From: Thalia democratica
Lineage: Eukaryota
Assembly: GCA_965202585.1 (NCBI GenBank)
Contig: OZ241828.1
Span: 58,156,001-58,220,000, forward strand
DNA: 64,000 nt
Direction: 5' to 3'
In this document: positions 1 to 24,621 of the stretch, one piece after another
Position numbering within the stretch: position 1 is the first letter of the stretch
Layout of the letters: each line of letters begins with the position of its first letter
Notes under the pieces: generated by a model
What the model was told of the DNA's origin: nothing
Seen by the model: the letters and a program-made list of their open reading frames with translations, nothing else
Databases searched by the model: none
Program-made: the position numbers and the translations under genes

Positions 1-613
1 ACAGTTACAGAATTGTTACTATTACTTCCAATTTCACCATCAGTAGTTGGAGTTTCAACTTGATCTGATTTATATTGGTTCTTGTCTTTTCTATTACTTT
101 TGCTGTGTAATAGTGTTCATTAAAAGTTTTAGAAAAAACAAGAAAAAAATTTGTAATCAAAGTAATATTATATTATTTAAATATCGATATTTCAATTTAA
201 CAAACAAACTTGAAATGTTCAGTTTTCAATTCTTCTTTTAAACGATTTACTTCATTAGAAAGCTTCTTGTTAGAATTAAACAAATGCTTATTTTCAATTG
301 TTAACTTTTTCACTTGATTTTGAAAGCTAATATTTTTAGCTTGCAACTTATCAATAATTTCTTTCAAATTGACCAGAAGCAAATTTGCTTGGTTTGATAT
401 ATCTTCTAGGAATAGACATACTTTGTAATTAATACCACATAAATGTAAACATTTTGAAATTAAGTAACAAATTTTTTGTTGTACATACTTTTCATATAAA
501 AACAGATAAATATATTTAAACTTTTATGTTTGTAATTATATAAATCTGATAGTCAATTAAAGTAAGTTATACTTACCTTCATCTATAAGTATGTCTTTAA
601 AAGTAGATTCCAT
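1..613 (-). CDS. Zipper-C2H2 gene, unit 0: exons 1-3 only (577-613, 210-405, 102 to window edge); zinc-finger exon lies off-window
   Basis: 37-nt exon 1 (MESTFKDILIDE, donor gtaagt), 196-nt exon 2 (EDISNQANLLLVNLKEIIDKLQ..., contains ORF 197..382) and exon 3 (KSNRKDKNQYKSDQVETPTTDGEIG...) splice in frame at GT/AG sites. Phases match units B and F. Confidence 0.8.
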
Positions 614-1205
614 TATGGACTTGATTAATATAAAAAATTATCTGTACGCAAAAAACTCTCTAAGATAGGACATAATTTGGTTTAATTTCTATACCACAAC
701 AAATTTTATAACTAAATAAGTTTAAAAGTTTCACAAACCTATCAATAAAAGTTGTGGATCTAGCTATGAAAAAATCAATAAATCAAAATTTGATTAACAG
801 TAAAAACAATCTTCAGAAACTCTTCAGAAATTTTAAGAAATCATAACCATACTAAGTTAGAACATAAAATTTAAGACGTTTCAACTATACAAATACTGTA
901 GAAACGATATATTTAAAAAAAATTATCTTAACTAATCTTTAGTGAATATTAAATAGTATTTACTTTAAAAATAATTTACTTTAAAAATAACTTTCAAAAA
1001 AATGCATTTTTGATTCACTTATAACCACTCTAATTTGTATGTGACTTTCAAACTAAAGTCAGTTTTTATCAATAATTAAAATAAATATATACAGAAAGCT
1101 ACTAAAATGGTTTAAATGAAGTAATAACTTAAACTGTGGAATATAACTTAAATTTCTGTACAAATTTTGTTTTAGTTGCTTACAACTTCAAGGATTACTT
1201 CATAG

Positions 1206-3918
1206 TTAATTTATTTTTTTATCATGATTTTTCTAATGAACTCTTAAGTTAAACATTTTATTTGTTTTATAATTACAACGACTGCAAGCAAACTTTGGTT
1301 GTTAATGAAAAACCATGTGATTGCCAAACTGATTTTTCGTTTTGAAATACCTACTTTCTGGACAAATAAAACATTTGAAAGATTTAACAACACTATGAAT
1401 TGCTTTATGTCGCACCAGATCATATTTTCGGGAAAACTTTTTATCACAAACTTGACAAGCAAATGGTTTTTCTCCAGAATGAACTCTGTAATGGACTTTA
1501 AATTTTGAATTGCTCAGAAATCAGATTTCGTGTGTTGATTGAGAGTTCTTTGCGTTAAATAACTTTTATCAGAAACTAGACAATTAAAATGTGGTTCTGT
1601 TAAAGATGTTAAGTAAAATGTATCTTATTACTTCTAAGTATAATTCTTTAGTGAAATAAAATAAATTATTTTTCATTATGTTATCATTTTGTTACTAAAA
1701 ACAATTGTTTATAGTTTTTGATGAAAATTTTGAATTATCTTTTGGTTTTAATTTTGCCACACTAATAAAAGCTTTCATTAAACTTATTATTTTAAATTAA
1801 TTTTAGCTATAGATAGAATGCTTATCTAACTTATAAATATTTAATAGAATAAAATTGATATATAGTAATATACTTGAGTATTAATAAATTTTGTACTATG
1901 TTAAACCGTTAATTAGTTTAACTTAATACTATTTATATTTGACTTACAACTTAACTCTCTATAAAAACCGAACTTTAAAAACATGTACAAGCCACTTTTA
2001 TAATTTTTTTATATTATTTACCAGTTTTTCTTATTTAAAAAAAGTAAAAACTGTTTAAAATAGTTTTGCCAATTTAGAAATTTTATACTCTTTTTAAATT
2101 AAGAAGCTAGTTAACTAAATGAAATTAATACCTATTTGTATTCTAAAAAAACTTAAACCAATTTTCTAAAAAAGTTAATGCTTGAATACTTTAATTAAGT
2201 TCCTAATTAGTAATTAATTAATCTTTTATATAGTTGCAACTTTGAAAGCAAAAATGTCTGAGTTACATCAAACCAGCCTAAGTTTATTAGAAGTTCAAAA
2301 ATCTAAAAACTTGCTTTAAAATACAAAAGCTTAAATACCTAGATAAAATGTCATCATCCTAAAAAGTACATTATATGTAAAAAGACTAGTAAAAATAACA
2401 GTTAATAAACTACAAGTGTAAAGTTAGCTGGAATAATTTTTTTAAATGTCAAAACTTTGGATCTAATTATTTTTCTTATCCTAATAGCTAATAAAAAACT
2501 TTTCTTTTCATTCTAGCGAACGGTCATTAGTCTAAAAACTATAGAAATATTTATTAGATTGGGGTTTTGTTTGTTTAGTGGTGCCCCTTAGAAAAAATTG
2601 GATTTTTTATTTTTAATTTTAATTTTTTGACTAAAGTGAAAACAAAATAAAACTATAATAATTTTTTTTTAAAACCTTCTTAATAATATGTGTATAAACG
2701 GCTATAATTTTTTTTTTTACAAATTGTCAATATTTTGTACACTTTGGCCTTAATTAAGTTTTTTAATGAATTTTTTTAATTATGAACTCAAACTCATAAA
2801 ATAAGAAAATTCATAAGAAAACCCAATTAAGGCCAAATTTTACAAAATATTGACAATTTGTAAAAAAAAAATTTATAGCCGTTTATACACATATTATTAA
2901 GAAGGTTTAGAAAAAAAAAAGTCAAATTTTTTCTAAGTGGCCCCACTCAAAAAACAAAACCCCAATCCAAAAAATACTTTTATAGTTTTTAGACAAAGGA
3001 CCCTTCTCTAGAACAAAAAAGTTTTTAATTAGCTAACAAGATAGGAAAAATAATTAGATCCAAAGTTTTGACATTTTTTTAAATTTATTCCAGCTAACTT
3101 CACACTCTTTAATAAACTATACAACAGTCACAAAATTCTGAGAATTCAAAGATTTAATCAAAGTAAATTGAAATATAAATATCACACACACCTGAGTTTT
3201 TAAAAATGTCAAAAGCAGGTCTAACCTAGTATTTGTATATCAAGTAAACAAATTAGTCTGTTTGTTGGAAACCCTGTTTTGTATAAAAATAAACGAAGTG
3301 TATTAGCAGTAAAATAAAAATATACAGATAAAACAAATAATATTATTATAAGTCAGCTTGAATAGACATTTAAGTGTCTTAAAAACTTTTAACAAAAGTC
3401 TAAAAATTTATTAAGCTATCAACTAAGTAGAGCTTTTTTATTGTAGCATTTATCACTTGCTTTATCTGCAACAAAAATATTGCACTTAAAAAACAGATTA
3501 TGGGAAATAAAAGACGTATAAGAATTACAAAACTTGGTTAGGAGTTATTGCTGATATAAACTAAGTAATACTTATCTAATTTTTATAAAATATTTTGATA
3601 ATTACTTGTCGTTTTAATTAGTTGTGTTTTTTACAAATGATATAATTTCACTCAATTTATTTTGTGTTAGTTTAACTAGGGAGTGTTTAGCATTTATCTA
3701 ATTTTGCAAGTGCGAGGATTTTTCAATAATATTCAAACTATTTAGTGAAAAATTTAAAGTTAAAAATTTGAAGTTAAAATAAAAAATTATACTATTATAC
3801 TCAGCATAATAGTAAGTAGTTTGGAGTTTTGAAACTAATTGTATAATTTACAACTTAATTAAATAGTAAATTTTTACTAACCTTCATCTGAAAGAAGTGA
3901 CTCACCTATGAACTCCAT
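1206..3918 (-). pseudogene. Zipper-C2H2 pseudogene, unit A
   Basis: Exon 1 at 3882-3918 (MEFIGESLLSDE|gttagt) and a degenerate exon-2 homologue near 3550-3710. The ZF exon (~1206-1600) reads HSGEKPFACQVCDKKFSRKYDLVRH... with a deletion in finger 2 and in-frame TAA and TAG codons. Confidence 0.85.
2413..3108. mobile_element. ~700-bp foldback/Mutator-like MITE inserted in an intron of unit A
   Basis: Outer inverted arms (caagtgtaaagttagctggaataa... / ...ttattccagctaacttcacactct) plus an inner inverted pair at ~2671-2755 / ~2825-2908. Flanked by the direct repeat TTAATAAACTA at 2402-2412 and 3109-3119. Confidence 0.8.
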
Positions 3919-4566: not shown

Positions 4567-6796
4567 TCATGAATTTATATTAAATATTTGATTTGTCTTC
4601 TTGTTATGAGTTTTTTCATGCTTTTTAAGTGTACTTTTTCTGTGAGCTATATAGTCACAACGACTGCAAGCGAATTTCGGTTCATAATGAAATACCATGT
4701 GTTGTTTTAACCCATGATTCGTTTTGAAATATCTCTCTTCAGGACAAATAGAACATTTAAAAGATCTAACTTCACTGTGAGTTGCTTTATGTCGAACTAA
4801 TGTTATTTTTTGAGCAAAACTTCTGTCACAAATTTGACAAGCAAATGGTTTTTCTCCTGTATGAATTCTGTTATGCCTTTTAAGATCAAAGTTGCTTACA
4901 AATACTCTCGTGCAAACATCACATTTAAATGATTTTGATTCGTCATGAATTTTCATGTGCTGATTGAGATTATATTTGTATGAATAACTTCTATGACAAA
5001 CTTGACACTTAAACTTTTTGTCTGTAAGAATTGATATAATAAATTTAAAAAGAGTTTTTACTTAAATAAAGTCTATACAAACTATTCTTTCAAGTTCATG
5101 TAATTAAGAAAAATAAATAAAAATTTTTGTAAACAAATTTCAGAAAATTATGTAGTTGATTAATTTTATTTCATCAAATAACAAAAAAAAAACATACGAC
5201 TAGTTTTAGATGAGCTGTTCATTATATCACTAAGTTTCAGAATTTTTTTATCTTCAACTTGAAATGTAGTAAAATCTAAATTATTACAATTTTTAAAAGG
5301 TTTTATCTTCTGAGAATATATATTTTTTCATTGAAAATAAATATTTAACAACCTAAATTTTGCTAAAAAACTTGTTAGAGTATTAAATAAAAAACATTGA
5401 ATAATAATCTAACTCAGTCAATGTTGTAAAACTAAAATAGATTTAATTTGTTTAACAAGTTATTGTGAAAATAAAATCAACAGCAGAATTTAATTAGTAA
5501 ATTTTTTTCCAAGTTATTTTAAGCTTTTACCTGTATCATTTTTAGAAATAGAGTCTTTTTCAATTGTATGCACTTTGAATAAATCATTTTCTTCAAATTG
5601 TATATCTTTAATACAATCATAAGATTGATTAGCTTTAAAAACATTATTTGTCCATTTTGTAACAAATAAGCAATTTTTATGTATAACACACTAATAAATT
5701 ATTTATAAGTTTAAACTAGTTCAAAAGTTATTATACACACTATTTTCTTATATACTGGATGTTTCAAAAAATCTGTAGAAATAAATTACAAAATAACATT
5801 ATAAAAGACATTGTTATAACCTAACTAATTCATCCAATTTATAATAGTTAATAGTAGTTAACCAATTATAGCGCTTTAATTCTAATGTTATATAAACATA
5901 AAACTGGTTTTTTAACTAATATTTATGTTGAAAACACTATTTCATTAAAAAACATTATCATTTTAAAACACTTTCATCAAAGTTTTATTTATAATAATTA
6001 TTATAAATAAGTCAAGAAACTTACTTCTGTTTATTGTTTTTATAATAAACTTTATCTTGAAAGTTTATCTATTTGATGTCTTAAGTGGTAATAGTATTTA
6101 ATATATCAACTAGTTTAGTGTACTAAATTAGTTAATTTTTTAAAGAGAAGTTTAAGAAACTATTTGCTATACCTTTTTCTTTGTTTATAGGTGTACTAAT
6201 ACTTCTTCCAATTTCATCATCAGTATATAAAGAATCAACTTGACTTAATTTAATTTGGTTTCCATTGTTTTTAATCTTATTACTATTTCTGTAGCAAGTG
6301 TTTTGTAAACTTTAATTAATTGTTAGTAATAGCTTGTTAAACTTAATGTTCAGAAAACTCAAAAATAAACACTTACTTTTTGACTTCTGCTTTTATATCT
6401 TTTTTTAAACAATTTAATTCATTAGAGAGGTTCTCGTTTAAAATGATTAATTGCTTATTTTCGATTGTTAGGTTTTTAACTTGATTTTGAAAGTTAATAT
6501 TTTCCGCTTGTAATTTATCAATGATTTCTTTTAAATTTACTAGAAGCGAATTTGCTTGATTTGATATACCTTGAAGAAAAAAACAAGTTTGTCATCAATA
6601 CCATAAAAATGTAGACTTGTTAAAACTAAGTAACAAATTTTCAATAATGTACATAGTCTTGAATATTCTAAATACTATGCAATATTAAAAAAAAATATTT
6701 TACAATGTTTAAATTAGAAGTATTGTAATAGTGATTGTGAAGAAAGTAATTCAACTAACCTTCATCTGTAAGTAGATCTTTAGAAGTAGATTCCAT
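4567..6796 (-). CDS. Intact 5-exon gene (unit B), ~300 aa: leucine zipper + acidic linker + 5 C2H2 fingers; complement(join(4567..5021,5531..5632,6173..6288,6377..6569,6760..6796))
   Basis: All four introns are GT-AG, and exon lengths 37+193+116+102+455 = 903 nt give an open frame to TGA. Fingers: CQVC..HMKIH, CDVC..HNRIH-TGEKP, CQIC..HKATH, CSIC..HMVFH, CSRC..HEKTH. Confidence 0.85.
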
Positions 6797-7752: not shown

Positions 7753-10700
7753 CTAAGTTTTCTTGTCATGAATTTTTACATGCATATTGAAATTACATTT
7801 TGTGTGAGTTTTATATTCACAATGACTGCAAGAAAATTTTGGTTCATAATGATAAACCATGTGTCTGTTTAAATTATGTTTTGTTTTGAATGATGTTTCT
7901 TCAGGGCAAATAGAACATCTAAAAGATCTAACATCACTGTGAGTTGCTTGATGTTGAACTAAATGATCTTTTCGAGCGAATTTTCTATCACAAACTTTAC
8001 AAGCAAAAGGTTTTTCTCCTGAATGCTTTCTATAATGTCTTTTAAAGTTGATTTAAAATGAAAATAATTTTAAGCAAACATCACATTTAAATGCTTTTGA
8101 CTCGTCATGAATTTTCATGTGTCGATTGAGAATTCCTTTGCCAGAAAAACTTTTTGGCAAATTTCACAACTGAACTTTTTTTCTGATAATGTATTAAGAT
8201 TAAATTATATTACTTCAACCTACATCTCTTTTTGCTGTAACTTAAAGAAAAAATAGCCAAAAAAAGACTAGTTTTTGTTATAAAGATATTAATAAGAATA
8301 TAAAATAGCCACTTTTATTTTGCTTATTTAACAAAGAAATTTTTGACGTTTTTATAAAATTATAATTATTCTTTTTTTTTAAGTACTTCAAACAGCTATA
8401 AAATTTTAAATTATTTATACACCAGTAGCACTTAAATCTATAATAAAAAAAATTCTATTTTCACAACTTATACTAACATAAAATTACAATAATAAATTAG
8501 GGATTGCTTAGCTTAGTTCAAGACATGCCAAAAGTTTTAAATTGTTGCAATAAAGTATTATAACAATTTTTAATAAATAACAATCTAAACACATTACACT
8601 TTTTTTTTATAAAACATAATTTATTTGTAGTTTTAAAGTTAATTTGTAAACATTAAGTATAAAAAATAAAAATAATAACTTTATGTAAAACTAATACATC
8701 CTTAAAATTCGAAAAGGTACATAAAAACAGTAATACAGCAATCCCTCGCTAATCTACGTTTAGTTACAAAATTTGAGTTCTAGAAAAAGAAAATTAAGAT
8801 TTTTAAAACTCTTGACAATTTCAAGTAAATACTTTTAAAATCATAGGAGGAGATACACTTTTAATAAAACTTAAATCTTTGCATGTTTTGTGTGTGCCAT
8901 CCATAACAAATTTTTTTATTTTTATGGATCTGATCATTATTACTTAAGTGTCTTAACTCCCCTTCACATTTTAAAATCCTACAAAGCTCAACTCCTTACC
9001 AAACTTAAGGTATAAAAATTCAGGACACGTTCAAAATCCACCTGCGATCAAAATCCACCAAGTCAAAGTCGAGAACCGCTTACCGAACGAGGGCAAGGAT
9101 TAGGGGTAACAGTGATAGTTAAAAATAAACAAAAAATAAATTAAAAAATTACAAAAAATATTTAAAATATATTTGTAAATAAAGAAAATGTAAAATCCAC
9201 TCAATTTTTTTTACATTTTCTTAATTTATTCCTTTTTACATTATACATTGTATTTTACATTTTACATTACATTTATACATTTTTACCAAAAATTCGTTCC
9301 TACTCAAAAATTGTTTAATCTTACTTTAATATCATGCAAGACAAGTTTAATGTTGAAAAAAAAATGTTTCTGTTCACATAAACAATTTAAAAATGTTATT
9401 TTAATCCTTGTCTTTTTAAGGGAAAATTGGCCTTACAGCACTAAACCAACGCAACTTGAATGAAAATAGTTTATTAACTTTTACTAAAAGTAGGAAAGTA
9501 TCCGAAGTGATTCAAATCAAATACATTATCAGAAAACAGAATTTATAGTAGGTAAATTTGCTACTACTCGTTTAGTTACGTTCTCTTGTTTAATTGAGAA
9601 CTTTTGATGTGGACAAAAAATATTTTCAATCAGGTTGGCAAGAGGTTACTATAATTTATTTTTAAATAAATTTATATTAAAACCAGTTCGTATGCTAAGC
9701 TACAAAGCACTTTATATTATTTTTATAGTCTATTGTGTTATTTTTAGCATTTATTAATTAAGAAATACTTTTGTAATAAAGTCTTGTATTTTTAGAAATT
9801 CCAGTTTCATCAGTATATTTTTTTTCAGTTTTTACTTTTTTTGAAACTTCTTTTAATTGGACAATTCTACCAGTTTCAATTGATCCTAAACGAATGGAGG
9901 TCATAAAATAACAATGAACATGAAAAAAGTTTTTTTAAAACAAATAATTTTATTTATTGACTTTAAAGTAAAAAACTTATTGATGTTGATTAACTGTACT
10001 CATTTTTAGCTAAATCTACTAGTAAAAATACTATTATATAACAATTAAAGTAGAAAAACAAATTATTTTTGAAGTAATATTATTTGTTTTGAAATTAATT
10101 TTAAAACTACTAAATTATAATATAGGTTTCAATTAAACACAAAGGTTACTTTATTAAAAACTAAACAGGTGCATTAAATTTTTTAAGCTATATACAATTT
10201 ATAACAATCGTCATTTTAAGTTAAATTAGTAGATAAAAAATATATAATATATTGTAAACAACAATTTCAACTTACTATTTTGTGAAGTAGAAGATTTATT
10301 AATAATTTTAACAATTTCATCATCAATAGATGAAATTTTAAATTGATCTGATTCTGCTTCATTTTTGTTTGGGTTCTCACTAAGTTATTTGACTTTTTAA
10401 TCAAAATTATATTATTAAAAAAATTATGTTTAGTTGCAGCTTGTTTAGCTTTTAATAAAATAACTAAAACAAAAACTTTAAACTTAAAATGAATTCTTTC
10501 TTTGAAAATCTTTTTTTAACATATCGACTTTGTTTGTGAGATTTTTGTTTAAAATATTTAGTTGTTCTTTCTCAAATTTTAGTTTTTCAACTTGAGTTTT
10601 GAAGTTTTTTTTTCAGATTGTAACTTATCAATTAGTTGTTTCAAATTCACAAGTATTAAATTAGCTTGGTTTTACACGTCTAAAGAAGTTAATTAAATTG

Positions 10701-10861
10701 AATTAAATTAAACCATAAAAGGAAGGATTAATAAATATCTATTTTGTTAAATATTATGGTAACTGATATTTTTTATTAGTTTGTTGATTTTTTAAAGTAA
10801 GATAATCTGAAAAAGTTTACTAACCTTCATCTGTTAAAAGTGACTGATCTATGAAATCCAT
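7753..10861 (-). pseudogene. Zipper-C2H2 pseudogene, unit C
   Basis: Exon 1 at 10825-10861 (MDFIDQSLLTDE). Exon 2 has TAA as its third codon (GAC GTG TAA). The ZF exon 7753-8182 has a 1-nt frameshift in finger 1 and an in-frame TAA in finger 2. Confidence 0.85.
9025..9130 (+). repeat. Fragment related to the GGTA-ended MITE family
   Basis: Short aaaatccac repeats are followed by accgaacgagggcaaggattaggggtaacagtgatagt, similar to the internal motif at ~35595-35715 and ~36265-36425. Confidence 0.5.
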
Positions 10862-11567: not shown

Positions 11568-14226
11568 TGTAATGATATTAGCATCTCATTTTAGTATTTT
11601 AAAGCTTGTGAATAAATATGGAATTTTTTGTAACAATAAAAGCTTTTCTAAACATTTTTCATTATTTTCAAAACAAGCTTTTCAAAAACAATTTTTATAA
11701 CTCTTAAAACAATTTTCTAAAACAATAAACAATATTGTTTACTTAAAGGAGTTACATTTGTTTTAGTGCTTATAAAACGGAATTTGACTTGCAATTACTT
11801 GCAGTAGCAGTAGCAGTTTCGGCAGAGCATTCGGCAAGTGTGCTTTAAGTTAAAATGCATTTTAAACACGTTAGATTTAAGAACTAATACTTTCTTGTGT
11901 GTTTAACTTTAGTTCTCGTATAGAGTGATGTAATTGTATCTTTGTGTTTTTTAGTTTATGTAAATAAAATATAAGTGTTGTTTTGATTGTTGTATTTATA
12001 TACTTTAATAATCCCTACCCCCCTTAACATCTTTGTAACGAGACATTGGAAACCATGTGTGGCCTGTATTTTAGGAATCTTCTGATATTTAGGAATTAGG
12101 TGCCTTATCAATTAAAAAACGCAGCGAAAAAAAACTTTAGTTTATTACTAAACAACTTTTTAACGAGTTTCAAATTTTGACAGTAAAATTTGCGATAATA
12201 CTTTACTTTGCGACATTTCACTATGATAATAGTAAGAAAAATTGTGTGAATAACTTTCTACTTTGAAACAGCAAGTCTACAATTATAATACAAGTGTGTG
12301 GTAGTGGTTTATTTAGTTTTTAAAAGAGAAGCTTGATGTCAAGGATTTTTTGCTGGAAGTACTATATAATTTTTGCGGTTATTTCTATATATAGTTTTAT
12401 ATATGCTTTTTTAGTGCTTAGGTGCTTATTTTATTTGCTAATGAGCATAATATTTCTTCTTCTTAGTGCACAATATATGTTGCAACTAACATAAGTCGCA
12501 TGGGTGCGCAGTATTTCGATCCTAAAAAGCTTAATCTTTTTAGCTGAGGGTATAATATAAGTTGCAACTAACATAAGTCGCATGGGGGCGCAGTATTTCG
12601 ATTATAAAAAGCACAGTCTTTTTACTCTAGTGCACAATGTTCTTTTGAAGATGTTACAATTTACATAAGTCGTCAGGGGACGCAGTATTTTAGTGCAAAA
12701 TTGCATTTTATAAGTTGCCAAGAGAGCGCAGTTATTATATTTTACTAAGTAAAGAAATGTAAAGTAAGAACCGCAATAAAATTTAGAATTACAACAGCAG
12801 AATAGCTGCTCTTAATAACGTCTGAGTTTTAGCTGATGAAACATATTTTTCTATTTGTTTACTACTACTACTTTATTGTTTTGATCTGCTGATTGATTGT
12901 TCTAAAGTATAGATTGTATTTGTTTTAAACCAGAATGTTGCTGAAGTTTAAAAATATATTTGAATGAGTTTTCATCTTTCTTAGTCGTAAAAAGATAAGT
13001 TTCTTGCCTTATTTTATTACTCGTTTCAAGTTCAAGTATAAAATTGTGTTAAAATTTTCCTTTTGAAAGAAATCAAAAGTAAACTCCCCTTAAATTTAGC
13101 AGTCGTCGCTTGTAAATAAATTGTTGCGTTTATATCTTTTTAACGTTGTTTGAAGCAAATTGTTGTTTGATAACCACAACTTTTAAGCACACCTAACACC
13201 TTGCTACTGCATGAAACTTTAAAAGTTTTTTTTGTTTATAAGTACGACAATAAACAAAAGATTGAATGAAGATTTTGTGTTTGTTCTATTACGTCACAAT
13301 CAAGTTCCTGCTGTCATTGTTTCCGAAGCCAATCGATGTGGTGTTTTGCTGATCAACAAACCAGCTAGAAGACAGAAAGTCAAATGTTTCCTAAAAGAAA
13401 CAAGACGTTGTCAATGATCCAATTGATGGTTCAGAAGCCTCTATTAACAACCTGAGGATAACAACCTGAGGACAAGAACTTCGAGGACAACAAGCCAGAA
13501 GCCAACTAAATGACTATCATTGTTACCTTGTTGTGTTTTATCTAAGTTTTTGTAAATTATGTAATTTTTAAGATAATAAGAAATACAATTTCTTTTTCTT
13601 ACTTTTTTTAAACCGGACTTTTGATAATGTCTAAAAAGTTTAAAGTTAAGTAGGATTTTAAGGATTTTAATTATTTAAAACCAGGCTTTAAACGTTAAAA
13701 TTGAAAATTTAAAAAGAAACAATGTAATGATATTAGCATCTCATTTTAGTATTTTAAAGCTTGTGAATAAATATGGAATTTTTTGTAACAATAAAAGCTT
13801 TTCTAAACATTTTTCATTATTTTCAAAACAAGCTTTTCAAAAACAATTTTTATAACTCTTAAAACAATTTTCTAAAACAATAAACAATATTGTTTACTTA
13901 AAGGAGTTATTTACATTTAATGTTTGTTAGTACATTTGTTTTAGTGCTTATAAAACGGAATTTGACTTGCAATTACTTGCAGTAGCAGTAGCAGTTTCGG
14001 CAGAGCATTCGGCAAGTGTGCTTTAAGTTAAAATGCATTTTAAACACGTTAGATTTAAGAACTAATACTTTCTTGTGTGTTTAACTTTAGTTCTCGTATA
14101 GAGTGATGTAAATGTATCTTTGTGTTTTTTAGTTTATGTAAATAAAATATAAGTGTTGTTTTGATTGTTGTACTAATCTACTTTACTAATCTATATTACC
14201 CCCTTAATAAAATCTGTAACGAGACA
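11568..14226 (+). mobile_element. Non-autonomous LTR retroelement (TRIM/LARD-like), 2.66 kb
   Basis: Direct repeats at 11568-12045 and 13723-14226, each TGTAATG...GAGACA (TG...CA), with AAAT on both flanks (11564-11567, 14227-14230). A TGG follows 1 nt after LTR1, and a purine-rich tract precedes LTR2. There is no gag/pol ORF inside. Confidence 0.8.
12478..12690. repeat. Three ~85-bp-period repeats inside the LTR element
   Basis: acataagtcgcatggg(t/g)gcgcagtatttcgat occurs twice, plus a diverged third copy acataagtcgtcaggggacgcagtattt. Confidence 0.75.
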
Positions 14227-14898: not shown

Positions 14899-15762
14899 TT
14901 ACATTTTTTTCTTGTTATGAACTTTTTCATGCTTATTTAAATAATATTTTGTGTGAGATTTATGATCACAATGACTGCAAACAAATTTTGGTTCATAATG
15001 AAAAACCATATGATTTCTCAAACCATCTTTCGTTTTAAAAAATCTACCTTCGGGGTATATAGAGCATTTATAAGGTCTAACTTCACTGTGAACTGCTTGA
15101 TGTTTGACTAAATCGCTATTTTCAGCAAATTTTCTATTACAAATTTTACAAGCAAAGGGTTTTTCTCCTGCATAAATTCCGTGATGTCTATTATGATGTG
15201 ACTTGCTTACAAATACTTTCAAGCAAACATCACATTTAAATGCTTTTGATCGTCATGAATATTCATGTGTTAGTTGAGATTTCCATAGCTTGAATAACTT
15301 CTATGACAAACTTGACAATCAAACTTTTTTCTGTTAGTAATATATTTTTTTATTTATAGATAATATTATATATTATCTATTATTATACTATATCTATATA
15401 TTATAATATATAGATATAGTATTATAAAATATACTTTTAAACTAGCTAAAATTCCTACAAAACTTAAAAATGCAAATTATTAACTTTAAAATATTTATTT
15501 ACTAATTACAAATACTATATGCACAGCACATGCCAAATCTAACTAAAAAAATTTAGGGAATACAGATATATTTTTAAACATTACTAATATACAAGAAATA
15601 GATATACAAGTTGAGTTTGCAAAAAAATATGCACACTCTACAACATCAAAACAAGTGCAACATTTAAAAACATTTATAAATATAAGATTATAAAAGTAAT
15701 AGAAAACCAATTAGATTTAATTTACCTTCATGTATAAGGAAGTCTTTAGAAGTAGATTCCAT
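14899..15762 (-). pseudogene. Zipper-C2H2 pseudogene, unit D (exons 2-4 absent)
   Basis: Exon 1 at 15726-15762 (MESTSKDFLIHE) lies only ~400 bp from the ZF exon (14899-15330). Finger 1 has AAC TAA CAC and a 1-nt deletion (GAC GAT CAA). ORF 14899..15222 is the downstream in-frame remnant. Confidence 0.85.
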
Positions 15763-16569: not shown

Positions 16570-18265
16570 AAAATTTAACATTTTACTTGTTATGAGCCTG
16601 TTAAAATTACATTTTGTGTGAGTTTTATAATCACAATGACTACAAGCAAATTTTGGTTCGTAGTGATTTATCATGTGATTGTTTAAACAATTAATTTTTG
16701 TATTTAAGTTATCTCCTTGTAACAGGATATCAAGTTGCACTTGATTACTGTTTAGATTTGGTTGGAAGTTTTGAGCTAAAAGTTCATCCAAGCGTTAAGA
16801 GAAAGCTCGCAAGGTCAAGTTTTATACTGATGCAAGTTTAATACAGTTGACAAAAGAAGAAAATAAAGTGCAGACCAGAAACCCTGATGCAACATTGAGT
16901 TATGGAATGTTATATATAAGCTGATACAACAGACAGATGGGGAGATTCTAGCCACAGCCTGCTGAAGTAAACATGATAATGAAGAATAGACATTTATATT
17001 GTTTTGTTGTGTTTTATAAAGTATTTTTTGATTAGTATTATTTTTATAAGTATTTCTTATTTACATTCTGAGTAGTTAAATTGTATTTTTTTTTATACAT
17101 TCTTAAAGTATATTCTTGCTAGATTAAATCTTATGTAAAGGTTTTGACCACATTTAAAGTATTTTCTAAATTTGATGTTCTTTATGTATTTGTTAGTGTT
17201 TGCAATAGTTCTTTATATAAAATATGTTAACTCATGTCATGCCTAGTTTTATATAGAGTAGCCTAAGTATTATTAATATCATTATTTAGTATAAGTTAAG
17301 GCCATAGGGGGGGGTAGACCATGTTTTTTACAAGTTGATCTTATTTTATAGAGTTTTTACTAAGCTTCAAGATGCTTTTTACCGTTTTTAAAAATTCGAA
17401 TTAGTTTTTGAGATATGACCGGCCAAAGTCGGGCCGCATAACAGGTTCCTTATGGGAAAGGAAAACTAAAACGGCGAAAAAAGACTAATGCATTCAAAAT
17501 CTATCTCCTCCTTCATTTTTTAAGCAATCTTCTTCAAACTTTCACAGTCTATTCTTTATACAATAACAAAAAAACGTTATTTGTGACTTTAAAAAATTTC
17601 AAGTAAAAATACCTTTTTTTTGTAAAAAAAAATTTTTTTTGATGAAAATTCACTTTTTTTTTTTAATTTTTGTCATAAAATTACAAAAAAAAGGTATTTT
17701 TACTTGAAATTTTTTAAAGTAACAAATAACGTTTTTTTGTTATTGTATAAAGAATAGACTGTGAAAGTTTGAAGAAGATTGCTTAAAAAATGAAGGAGGA
17801 GATAGATTTTGAATGCATTAGTCTTTTTTCGCCGTTTTAGTTTTCCTTCCCCATAAGGAACCTGTTATGCGGCCCGACTTTGGCCGGTCATATCTCAAAA
17901 ACTAATTTGAATTTTTAAAAACGGTAAAAAGCATCTTGAAGCTTAGTAAAAACTCTATAAAATAAGATCAACTTGTAAAAAACATGGTCTACCCCCCCCC
18001 CCTATGGCCTTAAGTTTAGTATTAAAGGTACCTACATCTGTAGGTTTCATCCTAAAAGACAAATAGAACATTTAAATTTTTTAACTTCACTGTGAATTGC
18101 TGAATGTTGAAATAAATTATCTATTCGAGCAAGCTTTTTATCAAAAATTTGGCAAGCCAATGGTTTTACCCATTATGTGTTCTATTTATTTATTTTGAAG
18201 TGACTTCCTTGAAACTTTTTTCAAGCTAACATAACATATAATTGCTTTTGACTCTTCATGAATAC
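16570..18265 (-). pseudogene. Zinc-finger exon remnant, unit E, split by a ~1.3-kb insertion
   Basis: Decayed fingers 2-4 at ~18045-18265 (...QHSAIHSEVKKFKCSIC) resume at ~16570-16710 (NHMINHYEPKFACSHCDYKTHTKCNF). No exon 1 was found. Confidence 0.8.
17300..18009. mobile_element. 710-bp near-perfect palindromic MITE with TTAA target duplication (Kolobok-like)
   Basis: ttaa|GGCCATAGGGGGGGGTAGACCATG...CATGGTCTACCCCCCCCCCTATGGCC|ttaa. The arms are ~330 bp with very few mismatches. TTAA TSD plus purine (GG) termini fits Kolobok better than piggyBac (CC termini). Confidence 0.85.
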
Positions 18266-18747
18266 ATAATAACAGTTTTAAAAGCTCATCAAAATACACC
18301 ATAAATTTAAGTTGTTCACTTAGCAAAACTATGCAAATTAAATGCAGTCCTAATTTCAAGTCCTCAAATCTTTTGTAAAATTTATTTAACTTTTTTAATA
18401 TTTTAGTTTAGAATACTTATAACTAAAATTAAAACTAATTAAATAACAACAGTGAAATGAAATATTTAAACCACGAAATAACTTTTTAGTAAGCAAATAT
18501 TTATTAATTTGCTTCAGAATCTCAAAAGTCAGTTATTATAGCACATAGAAGAAATTTACAAAATGGCTTAAAATTATTAATTCTGATCTATGTATACTAG
18601 AAGAGCTTTCAAAATCTAAAAAAATTCCAATAAATTAACTTATACAAAAAGTAAAAACTATTATTTCATTCATTTGTAAATATAACAAATTTTTCAGTAT
18701 AAACTTCAGTTAAGTTGCTTTAAACTACAAGTAATGATTTCGGAAGT

Positions 18748-20694
18748 TCAAGCTCTTTTCTTGTCATGAGATTTTTCATGCCTAATCAGATTACATTTTG
18801 TGTGAGTTTTATAATCATAATGGCTGCAAGCAAATTTAGGTCCATAATGAAATAAAATGTGTTGGTTTAACCCAAGTTTAGTTTTGAAAAATCTACCTTC
18901 TGGGCAAATAGAACATTTGAAAGACCTAACATCACTGTGAGTTGCTTGATGTCGAACTAAACTAATTTTTTGTGCAAACTTTCTTTTACAAACTTTACAA
19001 GCAAAAGGTTTCTCTCCTGTATGTATTCTATAATGAACTTCAAGTTGTGACTTTCTGCTAAATACTTCCAAGCAAACATCACATTTAAATGCTTCTGATT
19101 TGTGATGAGCTTTAATGTTTTGGTTAGGATTTCCTTTGCTTGGAAATATTTTGTTAATATTCGATAATTGAACAACTTTCCTGTAAACATTATTTCATTA
19201 TTCCTGTTAAGTATATAGTATTTCTAATAAAAACATTGCTCAGTTAAAAAATTAAATTTTATATGATGCGTAAAGTTTCTTTTAAACAGTCGCAAGGCAC
19301 TTAGGACAATGCTTAAATTTAAGTACACAAATATACTTATAAATTAAAAAAAATATTAGTTTGTGATAAATACTTATGTGTACTTATGTAATATTTTTTA
19401 AAATGATAAAAACATATTAATTGTTTGAGATAAGCTATCTACTAAATAATAAAAAATTTCTAAATTTTCTTCTTGAGCTTGAAACTTGGTGTTAACAAAG
19501 TCTTATTTTCGATTTAAAAAAAATTATATCTATTAATCCTTACTTAAAGTATATATCTTTACTTTTCTCATTTGAATTACTGTTTTCAGCTGAAATTGTT
19601 TCATCCAAAACATTTTGTTCAACTTTTATGTCTTTCATACAACTGTCATTTTGATTGTTGTTGTTACTGATAATGTTATTCAGATCTGAAACAGTTTTTT
19701 TTATTGTAAATAACACGAAAACTAATTAGTCATTGGACTTTTGTCAAATTCTGCTTTAAAGCTAGACTGATGTTAATTAAAACTATTTATTTAAGATAGA
19801 AAAAATAAAGACTCTGTTATTTAAATTAAAAAGTTTAAACACCGTTGAATTTATCACAGAACTGTTAATTGTTATAATATACAAATATTAAACCCTACGT
19901 ATAGTATAGAAAATTAACTTTAATCTACATAAACGTATATATTAGGAAAGCTTTTATTATATTTAAATTAAAGTTATATTTTTTACTAGATAACGAAAAA
20001 CAAACAATTTATTTAAGCTAATTATAAGTAAACTGTTAACAATATTTTCTAACATAGAAGTGAACAAATCTACCTACTACTTTTAAAATACACAGATTTT
20101 TTACTAATTTTTACAATTTCATCATCAGTAGATGGAGTTTTAACTTGATCAGATTTATATTTGTTCTTGTCTTTTCTATTACTTTTGCTGTTTGAAATAT
20201 TCGTTAAAATAAAAGTAAAGTAAAGTTAAGATAGTAATAAAATATCGATTTTTTTAATGTAAAAGACTTACTTAAAACGATTTTTCGTCAAAATTTCCTT
20301 TAAACAATTCACTTCATTAGAGAGCTTCTTGTTTGAAATGGTCAATTGCTTGTTTTCAATTGTTAACCTTTTTACTTGATTTTGAAAGCTAATATTTTTA
20401 GCTTGTAATTTATCAATAATTTCTTTTAAATTTACCAGAAGCAAATTTGCTTGGTTTGATACATCTTCTAGGAATAAACAAACATGTAGTTATTACGAAG
20501 AAAAGGTTAACATTTTTAGAATTGAATAACAAATTAGCTATGTATAAATTTTCTAATGTTGTACATACTATATAACATAATAACTGATAAAAATTTTTTA
20601 AGTAAATATATTTATATTTTACAAAAGTGATTCTCAATTAAAGTAGAATGTACTTACCTTCATCTTCATGTAATTCTATAAATGTAGATTCCAT
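18748..20694 (-). pseudogene. Zipper-C2H2 unit F: exons 1-4 open, frameshift at the start of the ZF exon
   Basis: Exon 1 20658-20694 (MESTFIELHEDE), exon 2 20272-20467, exon 3 from 20187 and exon 4 (~19563-19683) are all stop-free. After the acceptor at 19181-19182 the spliced frame is that of ORF 18957..19190 (no fingers), while fingers 2-5 lie in the frame of ORF 18748..19071. Confidence 0.7.
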
Positions 20695-21524
20695 TATGGA
20701 CTTAATTACTATAAATAATTAGCTAAACGAAGAGATTGAAATTTTCAATTATAACATGAGTCACTTTATAGAAGTTGATATGCAGCATTTACTAGTTATA
20801 CCAGTGAAAACCTTAAAAAAAATATAACAATAACTTATTAAAACATTTATAAGTTATTTAACGAATAAAACTTTAATACTTACGTGCTAATAACTGATTC
20901 TTAGTAAAAATATTCTTGTAATAAAATAAAATTAGAAGCTTTAAATCACAAAATATAAGCTTTTGTTTTGTTGTAGATAAAAACTTCCAGCATTTAATTT
21001 TTAATAAAAAAAAACTTAGTTATTTATATATTTATTTTAACGTACTTGGTGCATTTTAAAAATATTTAATTGTTTAAATTTTGTAAAGATTGTCTGAAAA
21101 TTTATTTATAAACATATTTTCAAATGAATATGGCTACTGAAGAATTAGAGTGGAATAACAAAGTTGTTTTTACAAAAATACATAACTCTCTAAAATGGGA
21201 CATAATTTAGTTTAATTTCTATATTCACAATAAACTAATCTACAGAAAAATCTGTTTGAATATAACACAAATATTTAAAAAATGTTTGGATGTAGCTATA
21301 AAAATGTTTAAATAGTCAAACTTTTATTAACAGTTAAAAATATAAGATGTTCAAATTTTACACCCAGTAATCGATAATATGTTGTTGACATTGTTAATTA
21401 AAACAATTTAAACAAAATGCAAACAGTTCAAACATAATAGAGAGCATATGGCTAGAAATTTTTTCTCAAAATTTCATTGCAACTAATGACCAAGCATATT
21501 TAGAAAAAATTTGTGTTCAGTTTA

Positions 21525-23164
21525 TTACAAGTAACAAAGTTTTAATGAAATGTTATTTACTTGTTTTTCATGAGTTTTTAAATGTCTATCTAAATGAAAT
21601 TTTCTGTGGGTTTTATATTCACAATGACTGCAACCAAATTTTGGTTCATAATGATATACCATGTGGTTTCTTAATTGATGTTTTGTTTTAAAAATCTTCA
21701 TTGTGGACAAATAGAACATTTAAAAGATCTAACATCACTGTGAGTTGCTTGATGTTGAACTAATGTAATTTTCTGAGCAAAGTTTTTATCACAAATTTGA
21801 CAAGCAAATGGTTTTTTTCCTGTATGAGTTCTATAATGTGTTACATAATTGAACTTTTTTGAAAAGACTTTCAAGCAAACATCACATTTAAATGCTTTAG
21901 ATTCGTCATGAATTTTCATGTGTTGATTGAGAATTTTATTGCGTGAATACCTTTTGTCACAAATTCGACGAATGTACAACTTTTCTGTAAATATCTTTTT
22001 AATAGACCTTTTTATTATATAGTATTTAAAACAAGTTACATAAGTAATTTGAATAAATAACTTTTTAAGACAGTCAGAATCATTTTTAAATTTGATAGTA
22101 CAAGTAAAATATATTTAAAAAATAAGCAGAATACTTTAAATAGTGATTGGAACTAACTTCATAAAAATATTCATAGCATAAATGATTTTGAAATTTGTTG
22201 GTGATAGTTATGTGTACATGTATATTTTAAATAAAATTTATAAAAATAATAAAATAAAAGAAAAATCCACTACCAGTTTGAGATGAGATACCAACTTTAT
22301 TATTAATTTTCTGTAGTTTTCCATTATTAGTATGAAACTTGGAAAGATCTGTTTTTTTTTGTTTAATTTGACAATAAAACATTTTTTCCTTAATCATAGT
22401 ACATACTAATGTTTTGCCCTATTAAGTTTCTATTTTCAGTTGAATTAATTTCATCTAAATCATTGTGTTTAATTTTTGTGTATTTCATACAATTATTATG
22501 TTGTTTGTTTTTGTCACTGACAATACTATTTATATCTGTGATGATTTATTTTAATTTTAGTTGTAAATAACATTAACATGATTTGATTTATTTTGATTCT
22601 TGTCTTTTCTATTAGTTTTTCTGTGTTAAAACTTATAATAAAATTTTTTAGAGTCACAAAATCAAAATTATATTATATAAATTAAAGTAGAGCTATGGTA
22701 TTAACATAACATTTTTGTACATTGTTTAACAAACTTACTTAAAATGGTTTCTTTTCAAATCTTCTTTCAAACAATTTACTTGACCACAGAGTTTTTTGTT
22801 TGAAACAATCAGTTGCTGATTTTCAAATCTATTTGAGTTTTAAAAAGAATGTTTTTACATTGTAAATCTTCAATTATTTCTTTTAGGTTAAGCAAAAGCA
22901 AATTTGCTTGATTTAATACGTCTACAAATGAACAGCGTTGTAAACTAAGAGTTATATTACAATTAAATGAACAATATTTCAATATTAAACAACAAATGTA
23001 ATTTTGAGTCTCAAAAATATTAAAATATTTTTTAACTAGAAAACATTTAGTAAATTTCTAAAACTGTATTTTACATTTTTTTAACTAATAAACAAAGTAA
23101 AAAGCATTTAAAATAATACTGACTTACTGTTATTTCTAGTGAATGCTTTAGGTATAGATTCCAT
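21525..23164 (-). pseudogene. Zipper-C2H2 pseudogene, unit G
   Basis: Exon 1 at 23128-23164 (MESIPKAFTRNN). Exon 2 is frameshifted to TGA. Finger 1 has lost its first Cys (IRRICDK). Finger 4 has a TGA and a frameshift (ORFs 21698..21979 and 21525..21719). Confidence 0.85.
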
Positions 23165-24195
23165 TATACAGTTTATTAGTATAAACAAATTATCTAGAAA
23201 AATACTTGAATATTAACAATTTAACATGAGTAACATAATTGAAATTAAATTTTAATTTTAAAAAAACTAAGAAATTTTGACTAATACTTATATGTATTAC
23301 ATTTAAATGTAAACGAAACATCTTGACTCAAACATAAATCTATTTCATTAATAACTATTACTAATATATTGAATTGCTAAAAATTAAATAACTGTTTTAT
23401 ATTTTTTTAATAGTTAAAATGGAGAATTTAGATTAGTAAACTGGTAGACTAAAAACTTGAAAAGAAATTATTTATGGTAAACTGAAAAAAAAACCATTTA
23501 GCAAGAAATGAAATTTAAAATAATTAAATCTTTAAATTAAAATCTAAATTTAACTATAACACCTTTGTATCTACAATTTGTAACGAAAATGGAGCTATAA
23601 AGTGATAAATTTTAATTTTTTTAACTGTAGTTATTAGTAACTCATTAACATTTGTAAAATAAAATATTTAAACCAAATATAATATTATGAGGTTACACAA
23701 ATGTTATTTATTTAATTTAAAATCTTTGAAGTTTCCGTTGGTTTAGCAACCTTGAAGAATAAGAGATACATAATTTTAATAATGATTTTATTACTTTTAC
23801 TTAACGTTTTTTTAAATGTATTTAACTTCTACTCTTAACTGTAGGAGAAATAAAAAGTTTGCTTTAGTTAAGTTTACAATTAAAAAAACAATAGTGTGAA
23901 TTTTGAGTGTATTAAGCTAAAAGCAACGTAATTTGTTTCACAAATTAACTAAATAACAACAAGTTTTTGTTTTAGAAATTTATTTACTGCAAGATTCTTG
24001 TAAATAGATTATTCTCAACGAACGTTGTAACTTAGATTGGTTTATGAGAAGTATTTAAATCAAAGTTTTATGAATTTATACTAAAAAATCATGTTTATAA
24101 ATTAAAAAATTAAATAATTAAAACTAGTAAGTTTCGTACAACAATTTTATTAAAACTTTAACTTAACAAGTAGTAAGAGCGTTTAAAATAAATAT

Positions 24196-24621
24196 TTATT
24201 TCTTATCATGAATTTTTTCATGCTTATTAAAACTCTGTTTTGCGTAAGTATTATAATCACAGTGTTTGCAAGCAAACTTTAGTTCATAATGATATACTGT
24301 ATGATTTCTTAAATTATCTTTTGTTTTGAAAGTCTACGTTCTGGACAAATAGAACATTTAAAAGATCGAATTTCATTGTAAGTTGCTTGATGTCGAACTA
24401 ACTTACTTTTTCGAGCAAATTTTTTATCACAAATTTGACAAGCAAAAGGCTTTTCTCCTGTATGAATTCTATAGTGTGATTTAAGATGTGCTTTGCATTC
24501 AAAAACTTTTAAGCAAACATCACATTTGAATGATTTTGATTCGTCATAAATTGTCAACTGTTGCTTTAGATTTCCTTTGTTTGAACAAATTATGTTCAAT
24601 TTTAACAATTGATCAACTTTT
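24196..24621 (-). pseudogene. Zinc-finger exon remnant, unit H
   Basis: Acceptor cccag at ~24622, then TGT TAA in finger 1. Fingers 2-3 are intact in ORF 24309..24608, with a frameshift in finger 4. No upstream exons were recognised. Confidence 0.85.

Follow-up and report, generated by a model that had tools for sequence, protein, structure and literature searches.

A large tandem family of predicted leucine-zipper C2H2 zinc-finger genes in the tunicate Thalia democratica

Here, we describe a real and hitherto undescribed C2H2 family, which we call LZ-ZNF, whose defining module is a predicted dimerising leucine zipper. The window, the whole 64,000-nucleotide stretch of the Thalia democratica genome that was analysed, holds what we take, with a probability of roughly 0.75, to be one array of a very large lineage-specific family of leucine-zipper C2H2 transcription-factor genes, in which the zipper pairs the proteins. 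The zipper-exon pattern is far beyond chance. The genome repeats this exon hundreds of times with its boundaries conserved, and dN/dS is about 0.2 (dS 0.76, dN 0.155; 23 copies).

All units of the array lie on the minus strand of positions 1-24621, nine of them head-to-tail, as the first-pass annotation had read them (Table 1). Eight zinc-finger exon blocks fall within the window, and the fingers of the ninth unit lie beyond its start. The seven short first exons claimed earlier can all be placed, each exactly 37 nt and reading ATG...G followed by GT. Only unit B is fully intact; the other eight units are damaged by stops, frameshifts, deletions or degenerate fingers. A second unit, 20694-18757, is open and has damaged fingers, with a degenerate finger 1 and a C to Y change at the second Cys of finger 5. 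In unit 1209..3918 no zipper exon is detectable, and the stops of its finger exon are also present in sister blocks at C4:68.70 and 69.09 Mb. Unit 14908..15762 lacks exons 2-4, with only about 390 nt between exon 1 and the fingers, and upstream of unit 24199..24584 neither exon 1 nor exon 2 was found.

Table 1. Features of the LZ-ZNF array in the window (E1-E4, exons 1-4)
Feature	Position	Strand	Description
Unit B exon 1	6760..6796	-	37 nt: ATG + 12 codons + 1 nt (MESTSKDLLTDE); donor GTTAGT
Unit B exon 2	6377..6569	-	193 nt, seven-heptad zipper; phase 1 in, 2 nt carried out
Unit B exon 2 signals	6377..6569	-	acceptor AAG, donor GTAAGT; in-frame reference window:6379-6567:-
Unit B exon 3	6173..6288	-	116 nt linker; basic stretch, then TDDEI
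Unit B exon 4	5531..5632	-	102 nt linker; CxKDI(K/Q)xE motif reads IQFE
Unit B exon 5	4567..5021	-	five C2H2 fingers and stop codon
Zinc-finger exon blocks 1-3	24584-24199, 21985-21534, 19155-18757	-	
Zinc-finger exon block 4	18263-18059 + 16791-16597	-	split
Zinc-finger exon blocks 5-8	15338-14908, 8183-7756, 5021-4567, 1588-1209	-	
37-nt first exons, upper four	23164-23128, 20694-20658, 15762-15726, 10861-10825	-	
37-nt first exons, lower three	6796-6760, 3918-3882, 613-577	-	
Unit cut by window start	1..613	-	E1 613-577; E3-like 107-6
Unit 1..613, zipper exon	402-210	-	193 nt, open
Pseudogene unit	1209..3918	-	E1 3918-3882 (MEFIGESLLSDE); finger exon 1588-1209, two in-frame stops
Pseudogene unit	7756..10861	-	E1 10861-10825 (MDFIDQSLLTDE); E3-like 10375-10298
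Unit 7756..10861, zipper exon remnant	10671-10492	-	stops and a frameshift
Unit 7756..10861, finger exon	8183-7756	-	in-frame stop
Pseudogene unit	14908..15762	-	E1 15762-15726; finger exon 15338-14908, stop and frameshift
Fragmented unit	16597..18263	-	finger pieces 18263-18059, 16791-16597; unrelated DNA between
Open unit, 276-aa model	18757..20694	-	E1 20694-20658, E2 20464-20272, E3 20187-20078, E4 19685-19581
Unit 18757..20694, finger exon	from about 19133 to 18757	-	four-finger subtype
Pseudogene unit	21534..23164	-	E1 23164-23128; zipper exon 22921-22739, frameshift
Unit 21534..23164, finger exon	21985-21534	-	frameshift in finger 4
5'-truncated unit	24199..24584	-	finger exon alone, frameshift

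Unit B (6796-4567, minus strand) can be spliced in silico from five exons into a 903-nt open reading frame of 300 aa, across four introns of compatible phase with GT-AG at every junction. Its product runs from a short N-terminus through a seven-heptad leucine zipper and a linker to five C2H2 fingers. The translation of exon 2 matches the heptads quoted in the first-pass annotation, with Leu or Phe at every seventh residue (12, 19, 26, 33, 40, 47, 54, counted along the exon peptide) and a positions that read L-I-N-V-N-N-L-I, three of them Asn. The 25 residues N-terminal to the zipper (MESTSKDLLTDEGISNQAN...) are acidic or neutral, in line with the earlier remark that no basic region precedes it. 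The linker, by contrast, had been called acidic and is not: with 15 D+E and 15 K+R its charge is mixed, with acidic patches and no net acidity. Pfam (zf-C2H2, E=1.1e-21, five stretches; zf-H2C2_2, E=1.9e-23) and a regular expression both find five fingers in the last exon, arranged in tandem as C-x2-4-C-x12-H-x3-5-H with TGEKP-type linkers, save for finger 4, whose spacing is an atypical C-x2-C-x14-H-x3-H. Five fingers per gene, as first claimed, is thus right for unit B and wrong for a part of the family, which has four.

The zipper exon is under purifying selection, strongest at the a and d positions, where pN/pS is 0.12, compared with 0.35 at b/c/f and 0.49 at e/g. Position d is almost invariably L or F, the family's a positions read I-N-V-N-N-V-L, and Asn is found at a23, a37 and a44 in 19-21 of 23 copies. 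Seven of nine internal insertions are exactly 7 residues long and three 7-residue deletions were observed; deletions of other lengths come mostly from truncated metagenome ORFs. The low a/d ratio, together with indels that are mostly of 7 residues, supports the view that the zipper is selectively maintained as a coiled coil, as judged from sequence.

Structure prediction on the unit B zipper supports a parallel, in-register homodimer, in keeping with the dimerisation module that had been proposed. For the exon 2 homodimer, ESMFold2 gave a score of 0.35, whereas the best control scored 0.00; contact agreement between runs is at least 93%, and partner pLDDT is at least 85. The modelled contacts are in register (23-23, 33-33, 37-37, 44-44), and the model is therefore parallel. 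Of the proteins solved as one-chain pairs, 21 of 30 attained the mark for calling a dimer, and of those solved as single chains, 0 of 23; among eukaryotic proteins, the mark was attained by 17 of 29 pairs (only 1 of the 7 without an older solved relative) and 0 of 30 single chains. A pass may reflect likeness rather than binding, because amphipathic helices are easily paired by structure models and many solved complexes look like zippers. Asn at a with Leu at d is the classic signature of two-stranded parallel zippers, known from work on GCN4 and other bZIP proteins.

It is also conceivable, though we judge it unlikely, that the zipper is mainly an effector-docking helix for the coiled coil of a shared co-repressor or scaffold, with self-pairing secondary or absent. 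KRAB binds the TRIM28 coiled coil in this manner, and the zipper of AF10 binds DOT1L. The b/c/f surface of the LZ-ZNF zipper is conserved more than a bare homodimer needs, with D17, K18, Q20, A21, N28, K31, T34 and K38, among others, invariant or nearly so. A profile search of the Protein Data Bank gave weak coiled-coil matches, in which AF10, a hetero-binding zipper, was the second-best group (E=4e-4, weak), after streptococcal M protein (1.6e-06) and before the zippers of C/EBP beta and GCN4. However, the surface conservation may stem from young paralogues and gene conversion, and both the a-position Asn triad with Leu at d and the homodimer model that passed its controls point to self-pairing.

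If the zipper does pair the proteins, its a23/37/44 residues could also sort them. These residues fall into two classes, N-N-N in 44 sequences and K/R-K-N in 36, with few intermediates and with N44 nearly fixed, and both classes are present within the same clusters. In the window, the zipper remnant of unit 7756..10861 has Lys at a positions 23 and 37, as read by eye, and so belongs to the K-K-N class. Should Asn-Asn and Lys/Arg layers sort partners as in bZIPs, the zipper might carry a pairing code by which paralogues form defined homo- and heterodimers reading composite 8-10-finger sites. We advance this tentatively and lean against it; if true, hundreds of paralogues with only four or five fingers each could recognise fast-evolving targets, such as transposons, by combination, where KRAB-ZNF proteins use long finger arrays.

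Within the fingers, contact and framework residues evolve differently. In fingers 2-5, the DNA-contact residues (-1, 2, 3, 6) have an entropy of about 2.0 bits versus 0.5-0.9 for the framework, and contact residues show a pN/pS of 0.93-1.03 versus 0.40. In three recent copies, nonsynonymous change is lower than synonymous change, and synonymous divergence is near that of introns, about 3%.

The nine copies first noticed are a small sample of the family, which has at least 239 to about 850. A genome search for the zipper exon yielded 847 first-look candidates, mostly in clusters on one chromosome; all of the 150 that were scored had E<4e-12, and 124 of them lack a stop. A 23-nt exon-2 motif occurs 239 times in the genome, versus 0 for its reversed control. 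Clusters were located on C4, C6, C7 and C8. As in other expanded tandem ZNF families, the paralogues are clustered, undergo birth and death, and diversify contact residues on a conserved framework. The idea of a tandem C2H2 family defined by an N-terminal leucine zipper, with rapid turnover, is upheld.

Could the family instead be largely a decaying, transcriptionally silent tandem repeat, its constraint only apparent and due to recent amplification and gene conversion? As noted above, damage affects all but one of the nine units in the window; at three places on C4, multi-unit blocks are 96-97% identical, and pseudogenes with identical stops have been copied along; and a profile search of 1.84 billion proteins returned 84 matches, exclusively exon-sized marine metagenome ORFs, with no spliced product among them. 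We nonetheless consider this very improbable. With a dS of about 0.76 between paralogues and a dN of 0.155, unconstrained copies would have had time to decay. Constraint tracks the heptad register, internal indels are mostly multiples of 7, and contact and framework residues of the fingers evolve differently. In addition to the open zipper exons, 22 of 38 finger exons are open (about 40% of those sampled carry stops), and 12 distinct full-length models, of 259-303 aa, are open throughout. These models come from 31 sequences, the first 26 kb of the window and 30 fetched loci.

Across the family, exons 1-4 and the finger exon appear to form one predicted, spliced five-exon gene. Wherever exon 1 was found, it measures 37 nt and is followed by a GT donor. 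Of 39 models, 26 have an exon 2 of exactly 193 nt; none has lost the AG acceptor of this exon, and about two thirds of the 39 copies read GTAAGT at its donor. Among 38 finger exons, 20 have the yAG acceptor, in the same phase, where it is expected, and the four-finger subtype has its own alternative acceptor, common to its members; this acceptor and the exon 3/4 boundaries were set by rule rather than observed. Exon 4 carries an IK[VFIL]E motif in 9 of the 12 full-length models. The runs that contain the window are genomic DNA and hold no joints at the predicted splice sites, and three marine metatranscriptome runs contain just 5-7% of finger-exon words. That exons 1-4 encode a small coiled-coil protein of their own, in genes that alternate with intronless zinc-finger genes, is scarcely credible: no exon 4-finger joint occurs in these genomic runs or in the 84 profile matches, and a Met directly precedes finger 1 in some finger exons (KMFKC...), but exon 4 has no stop and ends at a conserved GT donor, the finger exon begins at a conserved pyrimidine-rich yAG of matching phase, finger 1 of unit B lies upstream of that exon's first ATG with an in-frame stop before it, and the order E1-E2-E3-E4-fingers recurs on four chromosomes.

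We favor the reading of LZ-ZNF genes as dimerising transcription factors. Such a gene would comprise a 37-nt exon, a 193-nt zipper exon (about 50 residues), two linker exons and one exon of four or five fingers. The zipper would pair two proteins in register, and the two short finger arrays would read a composite site. Contact residues would diversify between paralogues, giving each gene its own specificity, while the family would grow by unequal exchange and multi-unit block duplication and lose members as pseudogenes, by birth and death. The role of these proteins is probably sequence-specific repression or chromatin architecture, and possibly transposon control, by analogy with the KRAB and FiNZ families. 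An effector, if any, may reside in the linker, where most full-length models keep the exon 4 motif.

How zippers pair can largely be predicted and is easily measured, which would make LZ-ZNF a tractable system. Comparable families are found in tetrapods (KRAB), fish (FiNZ) and insects (ZAD). Each of these large, fast-evolving ZNF families has its own N-terminal module, and many more are predicted and uncharacterised (PMC10547256). LZ-ZNF would add a tunicate family of hundreds of genes, built on the simplest and best-understood dimeriser. It would allow one to ask whether dimerisation specificity co-evolves with DNA specificity, whether reach is gained by pairing short finger arrays, and whether such families track transposons outside vertebrates. 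It also bears on annotation: exons of only 37 and 193 nt define the family, and the protein collections searched hold no spliced family product.

Finally, LZ-ZNF appears to be lineage-specific. The earlier statement that KRAB, ZAD, SCAN and BTB signatures are missing agrees with our Pfam searches. KRAB (PF01352) has no match in unit B exons 2, 3 and 4 at E<=1, and at E<=0.1 it is not one of the 25 families most often listed for 24 zipper exons; SCAN (PF02023), BTB/POZ (PF00651) and ZAD (PF07776) match neither the unit B exons nor appear among those listed families. Residues 1-150 of unit B contain two isolated Cys and no C-x2-C pair, where ZAD has two Cys pairs. The zipper exons give only generic, sub-threshold zipper matches, most often to bZIP_1 (16 of 24 members, profile positions 25-63 only; best E 0.0014; unit B peptide 14 bits versus a cutoff of 27.6).

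The suggested analogy with KRAB, ZAD and SCAN clusters stands insofar as this is a tandem family defined by its zipper; the nearest functional analogy, however, would be to the dimerisation modules ZAD, SCAN or BTB, not to KRAB. BTB has a globular alpha/beta fold, and SCAN, which derives from a retroviral capsid, is a domain-swapped bundle of five helices. Unlike either, the LZ-ZNF module is a coiled coil, though it too is a putative dimerisation module that precedes C2H2 arrays, as in vertebrate SCAN-ZNF and BTB-ZF proteins. Selective pairing within the family is known for SCAN domains (PMC3458555) and is proposed here for the zipper. Insect ZAD-C2H2 proteins likewise place a dimerisation module at the N-terminus and a C2H2 cluster at the C-terminus, joined by a flexible linker (PMC7913770, PMC7655104), an order shared by LZ-ZNF, where dimerisation is modelled. 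Lineage-specific expansion, fast turnover and frequent clustering are also common to both. ZAD, however, is a zinc-binding, four-Cys treble-clef of about 75-90 residues, whereas the module here is a zinc-free alpha-helical zipper. With the KRAB-ZNFs of tetrapods and the FiNZ-ZNFs of cyprinid fish (PMC10547256), LZ-ZNF shares hundreds of tandem, fast-duplicating genes, short family-defining N-terminal exons, hypervariable contacts, and birth and death. It differs in its module, as the KRAB and FiNZ motifs are short acidic effectors rather than dimerisers, and in having four or five fingers rather than widely varying numbers. FiNZ, a 28-aa Glu-rich N-terminal sequence of cyprinids, bears by its description no resemblance to a seven-heptad zipper (PMC10547256). 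Membership of bZIP (PF00170) was rejected, since the N-x7-R/K basic region is absent and the Pfam match is sub-threshold. The zipper half of bZIP is nevertheless recognizable in heptad Leu at d, Asn at a and a parallel dimer, here modelled in silico, with the zinc fingers in place of the basic region providing the predicted DNA binding.

The leucine-zipper and C2H2 zinc-finger genes of this region are best read as members of a real, large birth-and-death family, LZ-ZNF, whose defining module is a zipper predicted to dimerise. Window positions 1-24621 of this strongly AT-rich stretch (about 23% G+C) carry a repeat unit of roughly 2.5-3.8 kb, on the minus strand throughout. Searching the window with the exon peptides of unit B, the five-exon gene at 6796-4567 (-), and scanning for ATG-N34-GT exons, we find finger exons in eight blocks, and a ninth unit has its fingers past the window start. 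The first-pass annotation thus described the array correctly: nine units, seven 37-nt first exons, and the zipper and five fingers of unit B are all recovered. Unit B is the only fully intact unit in the window. Assembled in silico, its four GT-AG introns have compatible phases and leave a 903-nt ORF (300 aa) encoding 12 N-terminal residues, the zipper, a linker of about 80 residues spread over two exons, and five C2H2 fingers. Unit 20694-18757 is also open (276 aa), but its finger 1 is degenerate and a Tyr replaces a Cys in its finger 5; all other units have in-frame stops, frameshifts or lost exons.

Features of the LZ-ZNF family in the window, with further examples among loci (L numbers) fetched from the genome assembly
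Feature	Window position	Strand	Found by	Further loci
37-nt first exon	23164-23128	-	ATG-N34-GT scan	
37-nt first exon	20694-20658	-	ATG-N34-GT scan	
37-nt first exon	15762-15726	-	ATG-N34-GT scan	
37-nt first exon	10861-10825	-	ATG-N34-GT scan	
37-nt first exon	6796-6760	-	ATG-N34-GT scan	
37-nt first exon	3918-3882	-	ATG-N34-GT scan	
37-nt first exon	613-577	-	ATG-N34-GT scan	
Zipper exon, frameshifted	22921-22739	-	unit B peptide search	
Zipper exon	20464-20272	-	unit B peptide search	
Zipper exon, decayed	10671-10492	-	unit B peptide search	
Zipper exon, unit B	6569-6377	-	unit B peptide search	
Zipper exon	402-210	-	unit B peptide search	
Subfamily with shifted finger 1	19155-18757			L040, L048, L050, L056, L057, L059, L061, L062
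Exon 4 motif C-x-K-D-I-K-x-E	19685-19581			L040, L044, L045, L050, L052, L057, L061

Other features lie in and around the array. The uppermost unit (fingers at 24584-24199) has no 5′ exons, and the Mutator-like element already noted at 26764-32915, slightly upstream of it, may mark a broken array edge. Between two zinc-finger units, a pair of roughly 450-bp direct repeats (11568-12013 and 13723-14191, 98-100% identical) brackets about 1.7 kb of DNA with a higher GC content (29%), and the segment 11568-14191 resembles a small LTR-type or TRIM-like element that inserted recently; it contains an 82-bp tandem duplication (12462-12624). A transposon origin of the repeat unit itself is rejected, given the lack of per-unit terminal repeats, the strict head-to-tail order and the conserved exon-intron structure.

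The first-pass annotation proposed that the family be sought genome-wide, for copy number and for linkage of zipper to fingers. A six-frame search of the entire 802-Mb assembly with the zipper peptide gives 847 first-look candidates; 150 of these were scored, all at E<4e-12, and 124 of the 150 are free of stops. A 23-nt motif from the beginning of exon 2 is present 239 times, versus 0 for its reversed control (≤2 mismatches). Same-strand clusters lie on contig C4 at about 22, 58-59, 63, 66-70 and 73-75 Mb, and also on contigs C6, C7 and C8. It is less likely that the zipper exons and the finger exon are two separate genes: the linkage recurs, with the order exon 1, exon 2, exon 3, (exon 4), fingers found head to tail in all fetched loci with enough flank. 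One 10-kb locus, L034 (C4:22700001-22710000), holds five family finger exons 0.6 to 3.6 kb apart and no detectable zipper exon, with zipper exons nearby at 22.713 and 22.729 Mb; it may be a differently organised sub-cluster. Window 1-7565 matches both C4:68.700-68.713 Mb (L031, L044) and C4:69.091-69.101 Mb (L050, L045) at 96-97% identity, introns and spacers included, and all three sister blocks share a pseudogene with two identical stop codons. Such near-identical blocks with a common dead copy imply that the arrays grow by duplication of multi-unit blocks across distances of 10 Mb, pseudogenes being carried along. Window 15913-21560 matches C4:59.44-59.45 Mb at 83-92% identity.

With so many copies decayed, the family could be viewed as a largely dead repeat, a reading that we consider less likely. 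Our statistics draw on about 40 zipper and 38 finger exons. Exon 1 has 37 nt and a GT donor in every case found. Exon 2 is exactly 193 nt long in 26 of 39 models; its acceptor AG is retained in all 39 copies, and its donor is GTAAGT in about two-thirds of them. In the 23 distinct open copies compared, dN is 0.155 and dS 0.76 for exon 2 (ratio about 0.2), and its coiled-coil core is the most constrained part, with pN/pS of 0.12 at a/d, 0.49 at e/g and 0.35 at b/c/f positions. Among 119 zipper sequences (genome copies and metagenome ORFs), d positions are nearly always L or F, and seven of nine internal insertions are exactly 7 residues long, as are three deletions, other deletion lengths coming mostly from truncated ORFs. 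Heptad-sized indels and L or F at d are what selection for an unbroken coiled coil predicts. By choosing splice sites by rule, we built 12 different full-length models that are open (259-303 aa). Unit B and its two sisters, the three youngest copies, have diverged by about 3% at synonymous and intron sites versus 1-2% at nonsynonymous sites. About 20 of the 39 sampled copies of exon 2 have a TAGAAG tandem (NAGNAG-type) acceptor, for example at window 20464-20476 and, near position 998, in loci L048-L062; both AGs preserve the frame, and the choice between them would make the segment immediately N-terminal of the zipper one residue longer or shorter.

In the exon-2 peptide, d positions are occupied by L12, L19, F26, L33, L40, L47 and L54, and a positions by L9, I16, N23, V30, N37, N44, V51 and L58. 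Leucine at d combined with more than one asparagine at a is typical of parallel two-stranded zippers such as those of GCN4 and bZIP proteins. The family is not bZIP, because the residues ahead of the zipper are acidic and a basic region is absent. Pfam returns generic coiled-coil matches only, all sub-threshold, most commonly the zipper half of bZIP_1 (16 of 24 members, best E 0.0014). As initially reported, signatures of KRAB, SCAN, BTB and ZAD are not seen, Pfam giving no such signal in exons 2-4. A profile search of solved structures likewise gives weak coiled-coil matches, streptococcal M protein first (E 1.6e-06), followed by the AF10, C/EBP beta and GCN4 zippers, and searching the ESM Atlas with the zipper peptide yields nothing beyond short generic coiled coils, viral and bacterial, which is uninformative. 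Modelled as a homodimer, the 63-residue exon peptide scores 0.35, the best of its three controls scoring 0.00, with contact agreement between runs of at least 93% and partner pLDDT of at least 85. Among proteins of solved structure, 21 of 30 one-chain pairs and 0 of 23 single chains also reach the mark that it passes (in eukaryotes, 17 of 29 pairs, but only 1 of 7 without an older solved relative, and 0 of 30 single chains). The pass may partly reflect likeness to known structures, since zippers resemble many solved complexes. The closest contacts (23-23, 33-33, 37-37, 44-44) make the model parallel and in register. The model therefore supports pairing of the zipper without proving it. That the zipper is instead a helix for docking a co-repressor is less likely.

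Beyond the predicted zipper, the finger exons are open over 140 codons in 22 of the 38 distinct copies sampled. In 20 colinear open copies, entropy at the DNA-contact positions (-1, 2, 3 and 6) of fingers 2-5 is about 1.7-2.1 bits versus 0.5-0.9 for the rest of the finger, and pN/pS is 0.93-1.03 at contact codons versus 0.40 at non-contact codons. At the sequence level, this is the pattern of families diversifying DNA specificity on a fixed scaffold, and is not by itself proof of positive selection. The frameworks of fingers 4-5 are the most conserved, including an unusual finger 4 with x14 spacing. Five fingers, as first described, hold for unit B by Pfam, and not family-wide, part of the family being four-fingered: one subfamily (9 of 38 finger exons) has a common one-base shift, by which the ancestral finger 1 falls out of frame. 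Also common to the subfamily, some 50 nt downstream, is a pyrimidine-rich AG that as a putative acceptor would restore the frame and give four-finger proteins. The linker, initially called acidic, has mixed charge instead: in exon 3, a T/S-DDE-I/V patch comes after a run of basic residues. Exon 4 encodes a conserved C-x-K-D-I-K-x-E motif. Nine of the 12 full-length models retain IK[VFIL]E, which matches psi-K-x-E, the SUMO-acceptor consensus; in unit B, Q replaces the lysine (IQFE) and the motif is lost. This motif is a lead to a possible site of effector function.

Outside this genome, we compared a profile of 24 zipper exons with 1.84 billion representative proteins (E≤1e-3). Of the 84 matches, 82 are ORFs of 47-112 residues, consisting of single exons with translated intron on both sides, and none of the 84 contains an exon 1-exon 2 or exon 2-exon 3 junction peptide. 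The two long matches (P0082 and P0084, E about 5e-4 to 8e-4) are coiled-coil proteins of repetitive sequence and are unrelated. At the sensitivity of this search, the module is found in no annotated protein of any organism. The metagenome ORFs that we traced come from ENA and Logan assemblies. One 3.3-kb contig, traced in detail to Tara Oceans project PRJEB4352, carries a finger ORF some 1.5 kb upstream of its zipper ORF and matches this genome at only 87% at best, so the family is probably also present in a related oceanic population or species. Literature searches for an expanded zipper-plus-C2H2 family, or for tunicate zinc-finger expansions, returned nothing relevant. Many uncharacterised zinc-finger families are explicitly expected (Wells et al., PMC10547256).

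Three sequencing runs contain unit B. They are genomic DNA, since their contigs cross its introns and joints at its predicted splice sites are absent; word depth is several hundred times higher over the finger exon, as a repeat of many collapsed copies should show. The sole sign of transcription amounts to no more than a hint: in a single study, three marine metatranscriptome runs each contain 5-7% of sampled 31-mers of the unit B finger exon, too little to claim expression.

Two main classes of zipper can be distinguished by their a positions, N-N-N (44 sequences) and K/R-K-N (36), with intermediates. Both occur in one cluster: read by eye, the decayed zipper at 10671-10492 is K-K-N, and its neighbours are N-N-N. 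In bZIPs, a-position layers of this kind sort partners, and together with the presence of two classes within one cluster this makes a zipper pairing code plausible by analogy. In its predicted function, LZ-ZNF is nearest to the dimerisers ZAD, SCAN and BTB, and less close to KRAB, an effector.
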